DNA from: Diplonema japonicum
Taxonomy: Eukaryota; Protista; Euglenozoa: Diplonemea
Direction: 5' to 3'
NCBI GenBank assembly: GCA_964019335.1
Contig: OZ025692.1
Span: forward strand, 1-64,000
DNA length: 64,000 nt
In this document: piece after piece, positions 10,308-62,318 of the stretch
Numbering within the stretch: position 1 is the stretch's first letter
Layout: each line of letters opens with the position of its first letter
Program-made: the position numbers and the translations under genes
Notes under the pieces: model-generated
What the model saw: only the letters and a program-made list of their open reading frames with translations
Database searches by the model: none
Told to the model about the DNA's origin: nothing

Positions 10308-13300
10308 CTACGACAGATCAATGAATCCGCAGAGCAACAAAACGGACGTTTTTAGGAACTGGAAGATGCAGAAATCAAGAAGAATACTTAGTAACCAAAT
10401 GAGGAACCAATCACTTGTACTGATGTTGTTGTTTTCAGAAAGGAAGTGACAACCGACCAGACAACAGACAATACCGAATAGGTGCATGACATAAGCAAGG
10501 TGCAAATAAGTGGTAGGGAGGATCGTGTCGCGTATGTGCGTCAAAAAATTATATGCCTTCAGATGATTGTGTTGGGCGATCTGTGAGTGTTGCTGTGCAG
10601 TAGTTTTTATATCATACATCATAAAGTGGTGTGTCGGCCACCACAGGGGCAGCGCACCCCTCGAAAGTCACACCGTTTATCTTAGGTGACGCCGAATTCA
10701 ATAAGCGTATGCCAACGAGGCCGCGCAACTAGTGAAAAGGTGGTCTAACGAATGGTCACATACTCGTATGTTTTTGATAGTTATTTCGTCAGCGGCAAAA
10801 AGAGTAATCGCTGTGCCAAACTTGCTCCCCGCATCCACAACTACATCTACACCCGTTCCTATCCCCTGGATAGTGAGAGAGCGCGGTACGCTGCTCATAC
10901 GAATAGGCGGGTATTCCCCTTCCAGAAGCACAATCACATCAAAAGGCCTCGAGCCCAACAATGCCTCGTCTACAGAAGGGAAAGGGTGCGTCTCCGTCAA
11001 GCCCAAGCTCTCAGAACCAATATACCTCACTTTAGCTGCGGTTTTTTTCGACTGTTGCTTCACGTACAACGTCCTTCCGGATTCCTGCTCTGTGAGCTCA
11101 CGCAACCTCCGTGTTGCGCTTGGGTCAGGCTTGTCTATTTGCATATCGTCAGCGAAGCGTGCTTTCTCTTGCTCTTCTTGGAAGGCTTCCTTCAGCCGTG
11201 TTGCCAGAGGTGCCGCTGGGCGCCTTGCAATGATCTCTTCTCGCTGTGTTGCATATTCCGCATCGAAGTACTCATCTGCCTCTGCATAGTGCCTCACCCA
11301 GTTGATACCTTCCGTCAGGGATCGGGGCTCGACGGGCTTCTTCCGCCCTGGACGCGTGGCGTGTCTGAAGATATGCGCTGCACGGATGAAGTCGCGAAGG
11401 AACTTAACGCTGCGGATTCCCTCATTCCAGCTAGGCGTGGGCTTACCCATTTTTGCAAGCTCCTCAACATCACTGATGTAGGGGAACTCGGGCTCCGCAA
11501 TGTTTTCCCAGTTGTGCAGCTCCTCTTTATAGTCACTGCTTGAGGCATTCAGGAGCACTTCGAACTCCTCTTGTGTGATTCCCAACTCATACTTCGCATG
11601 GTGAGATGCCCACAACATGCAGCTGTCTGGTGTTATCAGTGGGCCCAAGTCGGGTGATGCCTTCACAATCGAGTCCTTGAAGAAGCTTATAGCTTGGTAG
11701 AACTGGTGCTCATTTATCAGCTTGAGTGCAGTGTTCCACAACTCACATTCTTTCATATGAGACTCAATCCTCACAAGCACAGCATCAAGGGACAGGCTGT
11801 ACTCCGCTGCTGCCAATTCAATCATTTCGTCTAAGGGTTTTAGAGTGCTGCCACTGCATATGCCTGCGAAGCCATCCCTTCCATAGCTGCACGCCATGTA
11901 CAACAAGTGGATGCCGACGATATCCTTGTTGCGTTCGAAAGATAATTCAGCAAGGTTTTCATAATCCTCTCCCGTGAGCAGGAAAGCTACGCCTCTAGTG
12001 TTCATAAGGTTGCTACTTTTCTGTGTGCCGTGCAACTGTTGCTGCATCTTCGAAGCAGCCACCCCTATTGCCTCGCGTTCGTGCTCGATGGGCACCGACT
12101 CGGGAGTTGGTTTGGAAGAGTCTGACTTAGCATCGCTGCTGACACTGCTCTGGATGCATTCAGCCGAGCCCTCACTGCTCTTGGGGAAAAGACCTTGCAC
12201 CTCGTCCAAGTCATTGCTGATGTCATGAAGGTTGCGCACCGGCGCACCCTGAACTTCAAATGCCGCCAAAGCATCCTGCAAAGGGGTTTCTGCATCGCAA
12301 ATATCTTGATCCACATCCGAGAGTACCATTGGTAGAAGCCCTGCGACGCAACCCACCTTGTTTTGTATGAAGGCAGTCGAAGGCTGCGTCAGGAGCGGCG
12401 GGTACTGCTTAGGCAAATTGCCCATTAGCTTTGGTGCAACTCCCTTCTCCTCGCTTCCCTGGTGCGTAGTCTGTTCCTGAAGCTCTTGAATTTCACACAT
12501 TTCAGTCTTCTTTTCGTTTCCAAGAGGGCTTTTTGGAAAGACAGATGCGATCTCGTCCTGGTCTGCATCCGAGTTCAACATCGATAGCTTCATCAAAGTC
12601 GACCTGCGTCGCTGGAGCTTTTGCGTCTCAGGTTGCTTCTGGTGCTCATCACGATTTGTGATTGCATCAGTGAAAATTCTAGAGGTTTCCGTGTTTGGGT
12701 TGAGCTTTGTCGCCTTCGCAAACTTCCTGAGCTCTTCGCTGGAATAGAGAGGCACGTGGATGAAGGGGTAACAAAAAGCGATTGCCATCCCCTCTGTTAC
12801 CACAATAGCAAAGATACAATTCAACAGCAGCTTGTTGGGTGTGTTGTCAAAAGGGGACCACACGCCGTGCAGGAGCCCAATCACGACAAACAACAGCAGT
12901 GCCGTAAAATTCAGTGACAGGACACCTCGCACACATGAAAGAGGCGTCCTCCCAGACATCAGACGCAGCAATATATGACCGTGCTTATACTGCTGCTTCA
13001 GAGACACTTGGTAGAGATCTTCATGCAGCCACGCCATGAAGCTAAATGGTGCGGATTTTAATTCGTGCAACAGAGTAGCTCCCTTCGAATGCGAGACAAT
13101 CTTCAACGAGCGGCGTCGTAGCGCAGGGCCGTGACTTGATCGCACGTTTTGATTGTCAACACTTTCGGCCTGCTCAGGCATGAGTACCACATCTGAAGTC
13201 GGACACCAGTATTTCAGGATAATTTTCATTTTATTCTCTCTCCGCTTTACATCAGTCCTAAGAGCGGGTGCCAACGTCACAACCACCAACAATGCAAAGT

Positions 13301-61300: not shown

Positions 61301-62318
61301 GAAGCGTGAAGGTCAGTGTCTCGGTGCCTGTGGGGAGCGAGACAGTCTCTGTTGCTGTGCTTGTCGGTAGTGTGAGTGTCAGAGTTTCAGTGGAGGTTGG
61401 AAGCGTGAGTGTAGACGTCTCCGTTGCCGTTGGTAACGACAAGGTAAGAGTCTCTGTCCCTGTAGGGAGAGTGAAGGTCACGGTCTCAGTTGCCGTTGGT
61501 AACGTCAACGTTTCGGTTTCCGTTGCAGTAGGAAGGGTCAGTGTCTCAGTTTCCGTTGCGGTTGGGAGAGTGAGTGTCAAGGTCTCCGTTCCGGTTGGCA
61601 GTGTCAGTGTCACTGTCTCTGTCCCTGTTGGAAGGGTAAATGTTGTTGTCTCTGTAGCAGTTGGCAGGGTCAACGTCTCAGTTGCGGTGCCTGTGGGGAG
61701 GGTGAGGGTTAACGTCTCCGTTCCTGTTGGCAACGTCAGTGTGAACGTCTCTGTTCTCGTGGGGAGGGTGAATGTCACAGTCTCTGTCGCTGTCGGGAGT
61801 GTGAGAGTCTCTGTCACAGTGCTTGTTGGCAACGTCAATGTGATCGTTGATGTGGATGTCGGGAGGGTGAGAGTGAGTGTCGCTGTACTTGTTGGCAGCG
61901 ACAATGTAACTGTCTCTGTCCTCGTGGGGAGGGTGAAGGTCTCAGACTCTGTTTCTGTTGGAAGAGTCATCGTCTCTGTTGCTGTTGCTGTCGGCAGGGA
62001 AAGGGTAAGCGTTTCCGTTAATGTCGGAAGTGTAAGTGTCTCTGTCGCGGTGCCTGATGGGAGCGACAGCGAAACCGTCTCGGTCCTCGTGAGCAACGAG
62101 ATGGTGAGAGATTCTGTTGATGTCGGCAGCGTGGCGCTAACCGTGGAAGAGAAGGTGGGCAGAGTAGCAGTGACTGTCTCAGTCACAGTTGCCAAAGATA
62201 GCGTGAAAGAACCAGTCCCTGTAGGCAACGTGTAGGTGGAAGTCTTAGATGTCTGGGCATAGAGCGTGGGGCATGGTACCACCAGCACCAAAAGGAGCAC
62301 TGCATATCGCACAATCAT
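10308..62318 (-). CDS. Giant polycystin-1/REJ-GPS adhesion-receptor-like 5-TM surface protein, predicted 17,312 aa; exons 62318-10764, 10728-10618, 10580-10308
   Basis: ATG at 62318 with a hydrophobic signal peptide (MIVRYAVLLLVLVVPCPTLYA) and 17,185 stop-free codons containing REJ- and GPS-like motifs. Two GT-AG introns restore the beta-helix continuation and two more TM helices, ending at TAG 10308. Confidence 0.9.
10581..10617 (-). other. 37-nt spliceosomal intron (phase 0)
   Basis: GTATGATATAAAAACTACTGCACAGCAACACTCACAG; removal joins PLYD in frame to IAQHNH..., which encodes two TM helices. Confidence 0.82.
10729..10763 (-). other. 35-nt spliceosomal intron (phase 0)
   Basis: GTATGTGACCATTCGTTAGACCACCTTTTCACTAG; removal joins IKNIR to LRGLVGIRLLNSASPKINGVTFEGC, a natural beta-helix continuation. 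Confidence 0.87.
13422..13541 (-). other. GPS autoproteolysis motif (GAIN domain end)
   Basis: CVYWDEHKKQWSQKGV..VCETQHTSFF, located just before TM1 (IPLVAYFALLVVVTLAPAL). Confidence 0.88.
14500..16600 (-). other. REJ (receptor for egg jelly)/PKD-like module
   Basis: CDGVVLDALSS..YSWS, FAWSC..LTAGEIYVFRV, LVAFISGGDR..IDATSSVDP..SYVWSVC, NKPPAAGSFSI..GWSDPE..LSYSLGY. Confidence 0.82.
16630..20756 (-). other. Array of ~10 DUF11/CARDB-like Ig domains
   Basis: ADLAISVQG..FTVTVEAIG..A, VIENIGDYSAGGVVVT..DTNTSDNSDS, FTVDVVNHGPS, FKNRGTVLA motifs. Confidence 0.65.
20760..29000 (-). other. ~28 tandem ~95-aa two-Cys beta-sandwich-like modules
   Basis: Recurring G.GL...D......C ... G.Y..CY....W pattern (e.g. 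GEYRLCYR, GTYTLCYK, GTYKICYA, GTYQLCYK). Confidence 0.75.
29238..30422 (-). other. Cluster of 10 EF-hand-like Ca2+-binding loops
   Basis: DFDGSGYVELWE, DKDKSSQLDLKE, DKDGNGLVDLWE, DIDGNGELESEE, DHFGDGRISLTD, DYDGSGAVEFSE, DSDPKDGTLHFNE, DLDGNGIVSIGE, DADHDGQLVVKE, DSNKDELLSFSE. Confidence 0.88.
31095..51270 (-). other. ~25 tandem two-part (A/B) Cys-containing beta-rich modules of the giant protein
   Basis: Recurring G-x-GL/F..HRVS..C..CLSEY..G.DF (module A) alternates with PYG...G.GL..GMQIKF..C..L.VC..V.P.P..F.DTG (module B). I counted 25 MQIKF-like motifs. An Ig/IPT-like fold is inferred. Confidence 0.8.
51290..62245 (-). repeat. Coding 33-bp/11-aa Thr-rich tandem repeat (consensus TETLTLTLPT[A/G/S]), ~330 units, ~3,650 aa
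   Basis: Read directly from the translation; one Pro per unit, with Thr alternating with hydrophobic residues. Confidence 0.96.

Follow-up and report, generated by a model that had tools for sequence, protein, structure and literature searches.

The first 64,000 nucleotides (nt) of Diplonema japonicum contig OZ025692.1 (assembly GCA_964019335.1), referred to here in full as the window and numbered on the forward strand, carry a minus-strand gene whose predicted product of 17,312 amino acids (aa; 1,877 kDa, ~1.9 MDa) joins a giant repetitive ectodomain to a REJ domain, a GPS motif, predicted membrane helices and a cytoplasmic insert. We lean towards the view that this protein is a membrane-anchored giant adhesive tether or surface hair that passes load to its REJ/GAIN-five-helix unit and cytoplasmic insert. 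The ectodomain of ~16,300 residues would then be a single-polypeptide filament, built from tip to membrane of a 3,600-residue threonine (Thr) ladder, 79 disulfide-bonded Ig-like domains with an EF-hand interruption, ~11 DUF11-type sandwiches, REJ and GAIN/GPS. A pulling force or ligand contact would reach the polycystin-1-type REJ/GAIN juxtamembrane unit and, through it, the five-helix anchor and cytoplasmic insert. An earlier note on this DNA had listed a signal peptide, a Thr stalk, two arrays of cysteine-paired modules, EF-hands, a DUF11-like array, REJ, GPS and five membrane helices in this order, and all were found (52 + 27 modules and 3 + 2 helices). The extended polycystin-type anatomy is thus real, and the functional interpretation that accompanied it is partly supported.

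In the ORF (open reading frame) listing of the window, the minus-strand frame runs uninterrupted from 62318 to 10698, giving 17,206 codons when counted from its first ATG. The gene frame contains no internal stops, versus 430-1,134 apiece in the five remaining frames over this stretch, indicating that this is not a chance ORF. The guanine-cytosine (GC) content is even along the ORF (0.50-0.53), and the sole sharp change in GC skew lies over the Thr array, because of its ACN codons. At the end of exon 1 the genomic frame terminates 21 codons past a G/GTATGT site, and removing two GT..AG mini-introns on the minus strand (10763..10729, 35 nt; 10617..10581, 37 nt) restores the frame to a TAG at 10310-10308. 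Through this splicing, exon 1 (51,555 nt; 17,185 stop-free codons) is extended by 127 residues, which hold two of the five membrane helices, and by the stop. The 17,312-residue total was computed piecewise, with the exons translated and searched separately, and it agrees with the earlier estimate of ~17,300 aa and ~1.9 MDa encoded nearly entirely by one 51.5-kb exon. The features at the 3' end of the gene are as follows.

10618..10728, minus strand: exon 2, 37 aa (LRGLVGIRLLNSASPKINGVTFEGCAAPVVADTPLYD), by translation
10308..10580, minus strand: exon 3, 90 aa + TAG, carrying membrane helices 4 and 5
10729..10763, minus strand: intron 1, 35 nt, GTATGT...CTAG, exactly absent from a contig of sequencing run X1
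10581..10617, minus strand: intron 2, 37 nt, GTATGA...CACAG, exactly absent from the same X1 contig

Published D. japonicum introns have a median length of 41 nt, a G/GTATG 5' splice site and CAG as their usual 3' end (PMC12621601), and both mini-introns agree with this profile, intron 2 ending in CAG and intron 1 in TAG. A scan of exon 1 for GTATG...YAG found 51 GTATG against 50 expected, so additional in-frame mini-introns are not judgeable from the sequence. The 3' end of the gene lies ~10 kb from the contig end, the window being the first 64 kb of its contig in an assembly of 62.5 Mb and 132 contigs. A PacBio HiFi assembly of D. japonicum strain YPF1604 has been published at 62.30 Mb and is not yet annotated (PMC13598402).

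Public sequencing runs were aligned to 6 kb of the window (10250-16249). One 463-nt contig of run X1 skips precisely both mini-introns (CT..AC ends on the plus strand), and the unspliced sequence is present in three DNA runs. X1 is the sole run typed as RNA ('RNA?'), a typing that is itself a guess, and it also contains low-depth (2-6) pieces reaching 3.3 kb upstream of the stop. X1 differs from the window by ~1-2%, as another strain or haplotype would, and the gene is under purifying selection, with 11 of 15 differences between the X1 contigs and the window synonymous and the other 4 conservative. The earlier note had asked whether reads support contiguity, and over 10250-16249 they do: two DNA runs from different studies show zero differences, each inside a ~43-kb contig. 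We conclude that this is one real, spliced, selectively maintained D. japonicum gene.

It is very unlikely that the frame is split by internal trans-splicing or polyadenylation into several mRNAs, or that only its 3' part is expressed. Diplonemids do trans-splice a leader onto their mRNAs, and such a split could account for the restriction of RNA-type contigs to the final 3.3 kb, but in poly(A)-primed libraries a 52-kb mRNA would be represented mostly by its 3' end in any case. Separate genes would also need stops and starts, and the 17,185 codons of exon 1 hold no stop. All modules are diverged yet individually conserved, and the signal peptide occurs only at the far 5' end, yet all downstream modules carry secreted-type disulfide and sequon features.

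Judging by contig offsets, two short-read contigs from independent DNA runs (43,317 and 43,796 nt) seem to break off at ~51,746, the proximal edge of the Thr array; short reads evidently cannot assemble through the array. This apparent stop, together with three ~1-kb blocks of the array that are 97-98% identical, would fit a gene size inflated by repeat mis-assembly. Against this, the other Thr units have 65-78% DNA identity and are easily resolved by the reads of a PacBio HiFi assembly (PMC13598402), and two independent DNA runs agree with the window without differences over 10250-16249. A decaying pseudogene is contradicted by the intact frame, the spliced introns and the purifying selection, and we find both of these explanations barely credible. 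The ectodomain is made of the following parts.

62256..62318, minus strand: start codon and signal-peptide-like N-terminus, residues 1-21 (MIVRYAVLLLVLVVPCPTLYA, then Q); first ATG of the frame, Kyte-Doolittle peak 2.16 at residue 1
51510..62255, minus strand: Thr-rich array, residues 22 to ~3603; ~325 11-residue units of the form L-P-T-x-T-x-T-x-T-x-T
30936..51509, minus strand: 52 'A' modules, residues 3604-10461; length 110-150 aa, with a pair of conserved Cys in each
30462..30935, minus strand: junction segment, residues 10462-10619 (~160 aa)
29199..30461, minus strand: predicted extracellular EF-hand block, residues ~10620-11040; at least 7 canonical 12-residue loops
20763..28844, minus strand: 27 'B' modules by self-profile, residues 11159-13852; ~95 aa each, two invariant Cys
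16641..20741, minus strand: DUF11-like 'C' modules, residues 13860-15226; 9 by self-profile, ~11 by Cys-pair spacing

Signal-peptide cleavage would be expected after residue 21, and the Thr array begins directly behind it. Units are exactly 11 aa long in 287 of 309 cases (93%), the lag-11 autocorrelation is 0.70, and each unit has ~three hydrophobic residues in a regular T-x-T alternation, with neither Cys nor N-x-S/T sequons anywhere in the array. Neighbouring units share 72% protein identity and 64% DNA identity, and 71% of the identical residues in adjacent units are encoded by different codons. Array units are alike at 65-78% in DNA, except in the three ~1-kb blocks at 97-98%. The combination of low DNA likeness, a strict 11-aa register and codon changes indicates that the array is old and that its register has been kept by selection on the peptide. 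A young satellite was ruled out by the DNA divergence with kept peptide, and five plus-strand ORFs of 353-461 aa antisense to the array (51520-62235) were dismissed as by-products of repeat composition rather than genes.

AlphaFold2, run on an in-register alignment, placed one strand in each Thr unit of a solenoid-like model, at a predicted local distance difference test score (pLDDT) of only 60. A Foldseek search with this pLDDT-60 model returned solenoid-type chains only, all with E > 0.3 and not significant. Thr makes up 44% of the array, Leu 17% and Pro 9%; its Thr and Pro contents invite comparison with mucin-type proline-threonine-serine (PTS) regions, yet it has the high Leu content, the strict register and the strands modelled at pLDDT 60. 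It is unlike typical mucin PTS regions in the rigidity of the 11-residue register and in its ~three hydrophobic residues per unit. Either form, a beta-solenoid or an extended glycosylated thread, may be what the array adopts.

The Thr array is followed by two arrays of Ig-like modules. An iterated self-profile of the 'A' modules gave 52 matches (E 1e-36 to 5e-7), in whose alignment the Cys columns are invariant or nearly invariant, and the 'A' region contains 116 N-x-S/T sequons versus ~53 expected. C43 and C80 are likewise invariant in the 'B'-module alignment. The AlphaFold2 model of a 'B' module (pLDDT 87.4) has seven strands in an Ig-like beta-sandwich, for which the Foldseek matches were generic ones only (Ig, filamin and intimin), with template-modelling (TM) scores of 0.5-0.6. 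The 'B' profile also recovers the 'A' modules, indicating that the two sets are homologous and form one family. The 'C' region has Cys pairs 9-18 residues apart that recur every 105-155 residues, and DUF11 (PF01345) was assigned to two stretches of it (E 1.6e-8, 35.3 bits against a cut-off of 24.6). The 'B' and 'C' profiles and the segment from REJ to membrane helix 3 matched nothing meaningful in sequence searches of the PDB, and a Pfam scan found no family match in the junction segment (residues 10462-10619).

The EF-hand block between the 'A' and 'B' arrays was matched by Pfam EF-hand_7 (E 4e-26, 5 stretches) and EF-hand_1 (E 9e-22); like those to DUF11, REJ and GPS, the EF-hand match exceeds the Pfam cut-off. 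Canonical 12-residue loops of the form D-x-[DNS]-x-[DNSG]-...-E lie at residues 10633, 10711, 10745, 10866, 10940, 10979 and 11016 by pattern, and are predicted to bind Ca2+. The block is flanked by disulfide-bearing modules with no membrane helix between. Seawater contains ~10 mM Ca2+, at which extracellular sites would always be loaded, so stiffening is a more plausible role than sensing. The proposal of a Ca2+-modulated protein is weakened by this, as the sites of the EF-hand block would be structural rather than sensing. The membrane-proximal part and the membrane region comprise the following features.

14445..15779, minus strand: REJ domain, residues 15514-15958; PF02010 E 2.9e-40, 138.7 bits, at the same place in the genome search
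13422..14444, minus strand: GAIN-like region ending in the GPS, residues 16261-16299 (13422-13538)
13254..13316, minus strand: predicted membrane helix 1, residues 16335-16355; Kyte-Doolittle 2.37
12927..13253, minus strand: predicted first cytoplasmic loop, residues 16356-16464, 109 aa; no sequons, K+R 18 versus D+E 9
12759..12926, minus strand: predicted membrane helices 2 and 3, residues 16465-16520 (starts 16,465 and 16,497); Kyte-Doolittle 2.38 and 2.14
10764..12758, minus strand: predicted cytoplasmic insert, exon-1 part, residues 16521-17185; acidic low-complexity, a helical-looking region and a short beta-repeat-like end
~10440-10505 and ~10353-10409, minus strand: predicted membrane helices 4 and 5 (exon 3); Kyte-Doolittle 1.99 and 2.13

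The GPS (PF01825, 24-29 bits against a cut-off of 22.5) lies ~35 residues before membrane helix 1 and aligns cleanly with those of 20 other REJ-GPS proteins in the pattern C..W..W..G[V]..C.T.H-T-S-F. It is a one-disulfide subtype in which the second disulfide has been lost on both sides (G-V ... C-x-T-x-H), a covarying loss. A full GAIN fold may precede it, and residues 15959-16260, directly upstream, match only one protein, the relative P0001 described below. The GPS may also self-cleave, between T16294 and S16295 of a putative triad H16293-T16294-S16295 (13434-13442). The earlier description of the protein as cleavable was put too strongly: His-Thr-Ser is kept here and H-T-T occupies the triad in several relatives, but P0001, the only colinear relative, has H-I-L, without a nucleophile, so that cleavage is no conserved requirement.

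The five helices were called by Kyte-Doolittle hydropathy and fit an N-out, C-in, five-pass topology with a cytoplasmic insert. This predicted orientation is drawn from the signal-like N-terminus, the two Cys per module, the distribution of sequons (182 before helix 1 versus 1 in 774 predicted cytoplasmic residues), the K/R-rich inner flanks and the sequon between helices 4 and 5. A K/R-rich stretch (RTDVKRRENKMK) directly follows helix 1, consistent with the cytoplasmic side, and the loop between helices 4 and 5 (SENNNISTSD) has an N-I-S sequon and zero positive charge, which fits an outside location. The first cytoplasmic loop is partly low-complexity and shares the motifs W.PTSDVV and APF..AWLH.DLY with P0001. 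The whole insert between helices 3 and 4 spans ~700-770 residues, is partly conserved in P0001, to ~residue 16810, and has 1 sequon in the 665 aa of its exon-1 part.

Several families were looked for in this region and not found. PLAT (PF01477) had no match in residues 15921-16520 at E up to 5, no Pfam 7tm family matched residues 12501-17206, and PKD_channel (PF08016) had no match in the gene product, the same model giving 89 matches elsewhere in the genome. Pfam assigned no family to the insert, exon 2 or exon 3. The cytoplasmic beta-helix that had been proposed is not backed by any Pfam profile, as PbH1 and Beta_helix gave no match at E up to 10 in the last 180 aa of exon 1, exon 2 or exon 3. 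Language-model neighbours of the insert include Beta_helix and DUF1565 clusters at 0.87-0.88, below the lead threshold of that tool, and the beta-helix was not adopted.

An exhaustive search of 1.84 billion representative proteins with the segment from REJ to membrane helix 3 found P0001 as the sole full-length, colinear relative (E 1.5e-237). P0001 is an ORF fragment of 3,241 aa from a 502-kb ENA contig, and its alignment (36% identity over 3,281 aa) starts with the last 'B' module, takes in every 'C' module, REJ, GPS and three helices, and continues into the cytoplasmic part. The 'C' modules pair one-to-one with those of P0001, and this module-by-module colinearity indicates that the array was already present in the common ancestor. 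All other matches cover REJ and/or GPS parts only. A word-indexed protein search with the last 3,457 residues found nothing at E 1e-5 though P0001 is in that collection, which we read as insensitivity at 36% identity. Separately, the P0001 ORF seems to end by reading through into an intron, at a position that lacks one in the window gene.

Within the D. japonicum genome, the segment from GPS to membrane helices 1-3 and the cytoplasmic insert were each searched for paralogs, and no locus other than the gene itself was found. Its other parts recur. Two-Cys Ig-like modules of the 'B' type are found in other giant ORFs (C3:660-671 kb, 5,463 aa; C9:27532, 8,600 aa; C26:508-511 kb; and on C13, C18 and C22), and Thr arrays in further long ORFs (C4:267254-267841, in an 11,951-aa ORF; C7:666-683 kb; C7:40.8 kb, in a 6,755-aa ORF; C94:44-50 kb; C66:362-365 kb; C29:274-278 kb; C12:499-507 kb). 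The 11-residue Thr ladder is, on this sequence comparison, a common 'stalk' module of a giant-protein family in this genome. One 4,957-aa ORF (C12:497000-516999) has a Thr array along with weak GPS (19-26 bits) and Kringle-like matches; it was rejected as a close paralog, its layout being alike but its best BLASTP E 0.12. The paralog survey called for earlier thus gives a divided answer, the membrane and cytoplasmic parts being unique in the genome and the Thr array and Ig-like modules being reused in other giant ORFs. PKD_channel has its 89 genomic matches at ~75 ORFs (best E 3e-30; for example C40:493900-494457 and C38:301161-301718), pointing to a very large family of polycystin-2/TRPP-like channels, striking for a 62-Mb protist genome, that may include partners of REJ/GPS proteins.

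Polycystin-1 family proteins and adhesion G-protein-coupled receptors (GPCRs) have a GAIN/GPS module adjoining the membrane, and the combination of REJ with GAIN/GPS is the polycystin-1 signature (PMC3321182). The giant protein shares with the polycystin-1 family (PKD1, PKD1L1-3, PKDREJ and suREJ1-3) a big ectodomain of Ig-like repeats, REJ, a GPS/GAIN before helix 1 and a multi-pass anchor. It differs in being ~4 times longer, in lacking both a first-loop PLAT and a PKD_channel-like C-terminal half, in having five helices rather than eleven, and in carrying a ~700-770-residue cytoplasmic insert between helices 3 and 4. It also has a Thr array, EF-hands and DUF11 modules in place of Pfam PKD, LRR, C-lectin and WSC domains, and its one-disulfide GPS has H-T-S in the position of H-L-T. 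Because it has no PLAT, no eleven-helix layout and no channel half, we file the predicted protein as polycystin-1-like in design and not as a member or orthologue of the polycystin-1 family. Adhesion GPCRs are alike in having a long adhesive ectodomain that ends in a juxtamembrane GAIN/GPS (PMC3321182), and unlike in their secretin/adhesion-class seven-transmembrane domain, in place of which five helices are predicted here with no Pfam 7tm match.

REJ-GPS proteins occur in many protists, including Mantamonas, Percolomonas and Bigelowiella, and some are TIG-REJ-GPS proteins without PLAT or channel domain. Those compared (P0022, P0084 and P0129; Bigelowiella natans, Mantamonas plastica and Percolomonas) have the same REJ-GPS core and upstream Ig-type repeats, no PLAT or PKD_channel by Pfam, and a GPS that aligns well, including the G-V / C-x-T-x-H subtype. 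They are shorter (1,200-3,400 aa), the similarity ends at the GPS, and none of those scanned has a Thr array, EF-hand block or DUF11 array. Outside this group, the bacterial ice-binding adhesin MpIBP, MUC16 and Drosophila Dumpy are of megadalton size with long Ig-like extender or Thr-rich arrays, and MpIBP, like the giant protein, has Ca2+ sites in an extracellular filament. All three are unrelated to it in sequence, have a single-pass anchor or none, and lack REJ/GAIN.

A precedent in design is Mstax of Chlamydomonas, a protein of ~8,000 residues that forms the shaft of a ~600-nm surface hair (mastigoneme) with its N-terminus distal, and in which glycosylated repeats and folded domains are followed by a membrane region of polycystin type and a tail in the cytosol (bioRxiv 10.1101/2024.12.24.630281). 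The two are alike as single giant polypeptides with repeats, folded domains, a membrane region and a cytosolic part, a likeness of design for which no sequence relation is claimed. Mstax has hydroxyproline-rich repeats, lectin domains and a PKD2-like channel-type region, versus the Thr ladder, Ig-like modules, REJ/GPS and five helices here. The earlier statement that no described protein has this combination stands for the literature searched and for the single full-length relative among 1.84 billion proteins; the protein is not unique in kind, given its shared modules and the REJ-GPS proteins of other protists. Searches of the diplonemid literature found no mention of polycystin or REJ proteins, and those for 'diplonemid' with 'polycystin' retrieved polycystine radiolarians only.

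D. japonicum bears a glycocalyx as well as a 'hair coat' over its apical region, feeding apparatus and flagella, and its sessile stage attaches via a coat (PMC5845003). Our preference for a tether or surface hair comes from the filament-like anatomy of the protein, from this hair-coat biology and from the Mstax precedent. The ectodomain would reach ~0.45-1.3 micrometres from a cell 10-20 micrometres long, in keeping with the earlier idea of a very long tether. This estimate takes ~90 Ig-like domains at ~4 nm, the usual length of such a domain, and counts the Thr array at either 0.25 nm per residue (extended) or ~0.5 nm per 11-22-residue solenoid rung. The protein is also predicted to lie at the surface and to be glycosylated, and it may act in adhesion, mechanosensing, prey capture or a surface coat, as the earlier note proposed.

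A number of observations weigh against this interpretation. Surface location and function are inferences from sequence, and both the topology of five helices and the GAIN fold preceding the GPS are predicted. No similarity could be detected between the membrane module and the polycystin-1 helices, PLAT is absent, and the GPS of P0001 (residues ~2663-2680) is H-I-L, with no Ser, Thr or Cys nucleophile. On the side of the data, RNA coverage (depth 2-6) is confined to some stretches of the final 3.3 kb, in a run of guessed RNA status whose sequence is ~1-2% off the window, the comparison with other DNA runs covers 6 kb of the ORF (10250-16249), and the length of the Thr array is taken from the long-read HiFi assembly alone.

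Three other functional readings draw on the same evidence. In the first, the protein would be purely structural, the core of the hair coat or of mucilage, with REJ/GPS and the five helices serving only as an anchor or GPS release site and not in signalling. Both a hair coat and a mucilaginous envelope have been described in D. japonicum (PMC5845003), Mstax offers a precedent (bioRxiv 10.1101/2024.12.24.630281), and a Thr array common to many giant ORFs is what a coat-protein family would be expected to have. The missing GPS nucleophile of P0001 also implies that signalling of the tethered-agonist type is not conserved. However, a cytoplasmic insert of ~700-770 residues that is partly conserved and under purifying selection exceeds the needs of an anchor, and we regard a purely structural role as doubtful.

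A recognition receptor of the sea-urchin REJ or PKDREJ type is a second possibility, in which REJ-GAIN would sense a ligand (gamete, prey or conspecific), polycystin-2-like partners would carry ion fluxes and the repeats would act as a spacer. REJ with GPS is the signature of that family, REJ-GPS proteins are widespread among protists, and the 89 PKD_channel matches at ~75 ORFs could supply partners. Yet the protein lacks PLAT and the six-helix channel-like half through which polycystin-1 is linked to the polycystin-2 tetramer, filament accounts for 90% of its mass, more than a mere spacer would readily explain, and the description of D. japonicum in PMC5845003 includes no sexual stages. We therefore consider this role unlikely.

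The third reading makes the polypeptide the shaft of hair-coat filaments on the feeding apparatus and flagella, independent of Mstax, with the distal 3,600-residue Thr array folded as a beta-solenoid and not as a mucin, and tension read by REJ/GAIN and the five helices together with members of the greatly expanded polycystin-2-like channel family. We hold this, too, to be improbable as a whole; if true, it would describe a protist contact or flow sensor that works on the polycystin principle without the polycystin-1 channel half.

The surroundings of the gene were also surveyed. Upstream, a coiled-coil-rich gene (62670-64000, minus strand) leaves the window and ends ~350 nt before the ATG of the giant gene; it apparently has several very short GTATG...AG introns (~20-130 nt). 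Towards the contig end, a GC-rich block (1-4000, 64-66%) contains a 1,251-aa ORF (11-3766), and two minus-strand ORFs of 379 and 408 aa also lie near this end (1-4000 and 5734-8090). No Pfam family was found in the flanking ORFs at 11-3766 and 5734-8090.

At 17,312 residues, the giant protein is among the largest predicted in eukaryotes and by far the largest of the REJ/GAIN type. It has about twice the length of Mstax (~8,000 residues), and PKZILLA-1 (~45,000 residues) and titin are larger. It is an extreme new variant of REJ/GAIN receptors, undescribed in the literature searched. It places a REJ + GAIN/GPS juxtamembrane unit in Euglenozoa, uncoupled from PLAT and the channel half and joined to what would be a micrometre-scale filament. 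Its strict 11-residue Thr ladder, kept despite near-saturated synonymous change, is a structural puzzle. For the diplonemids, the gene is a concrete candidate for hair-coat material, and the giant Thr-array and Ig-module ORFs of this genome (up to 11,951 aa), together with its ~75 polycystin-2-like ORFs, point to an unexplored surface-filament/channel system.

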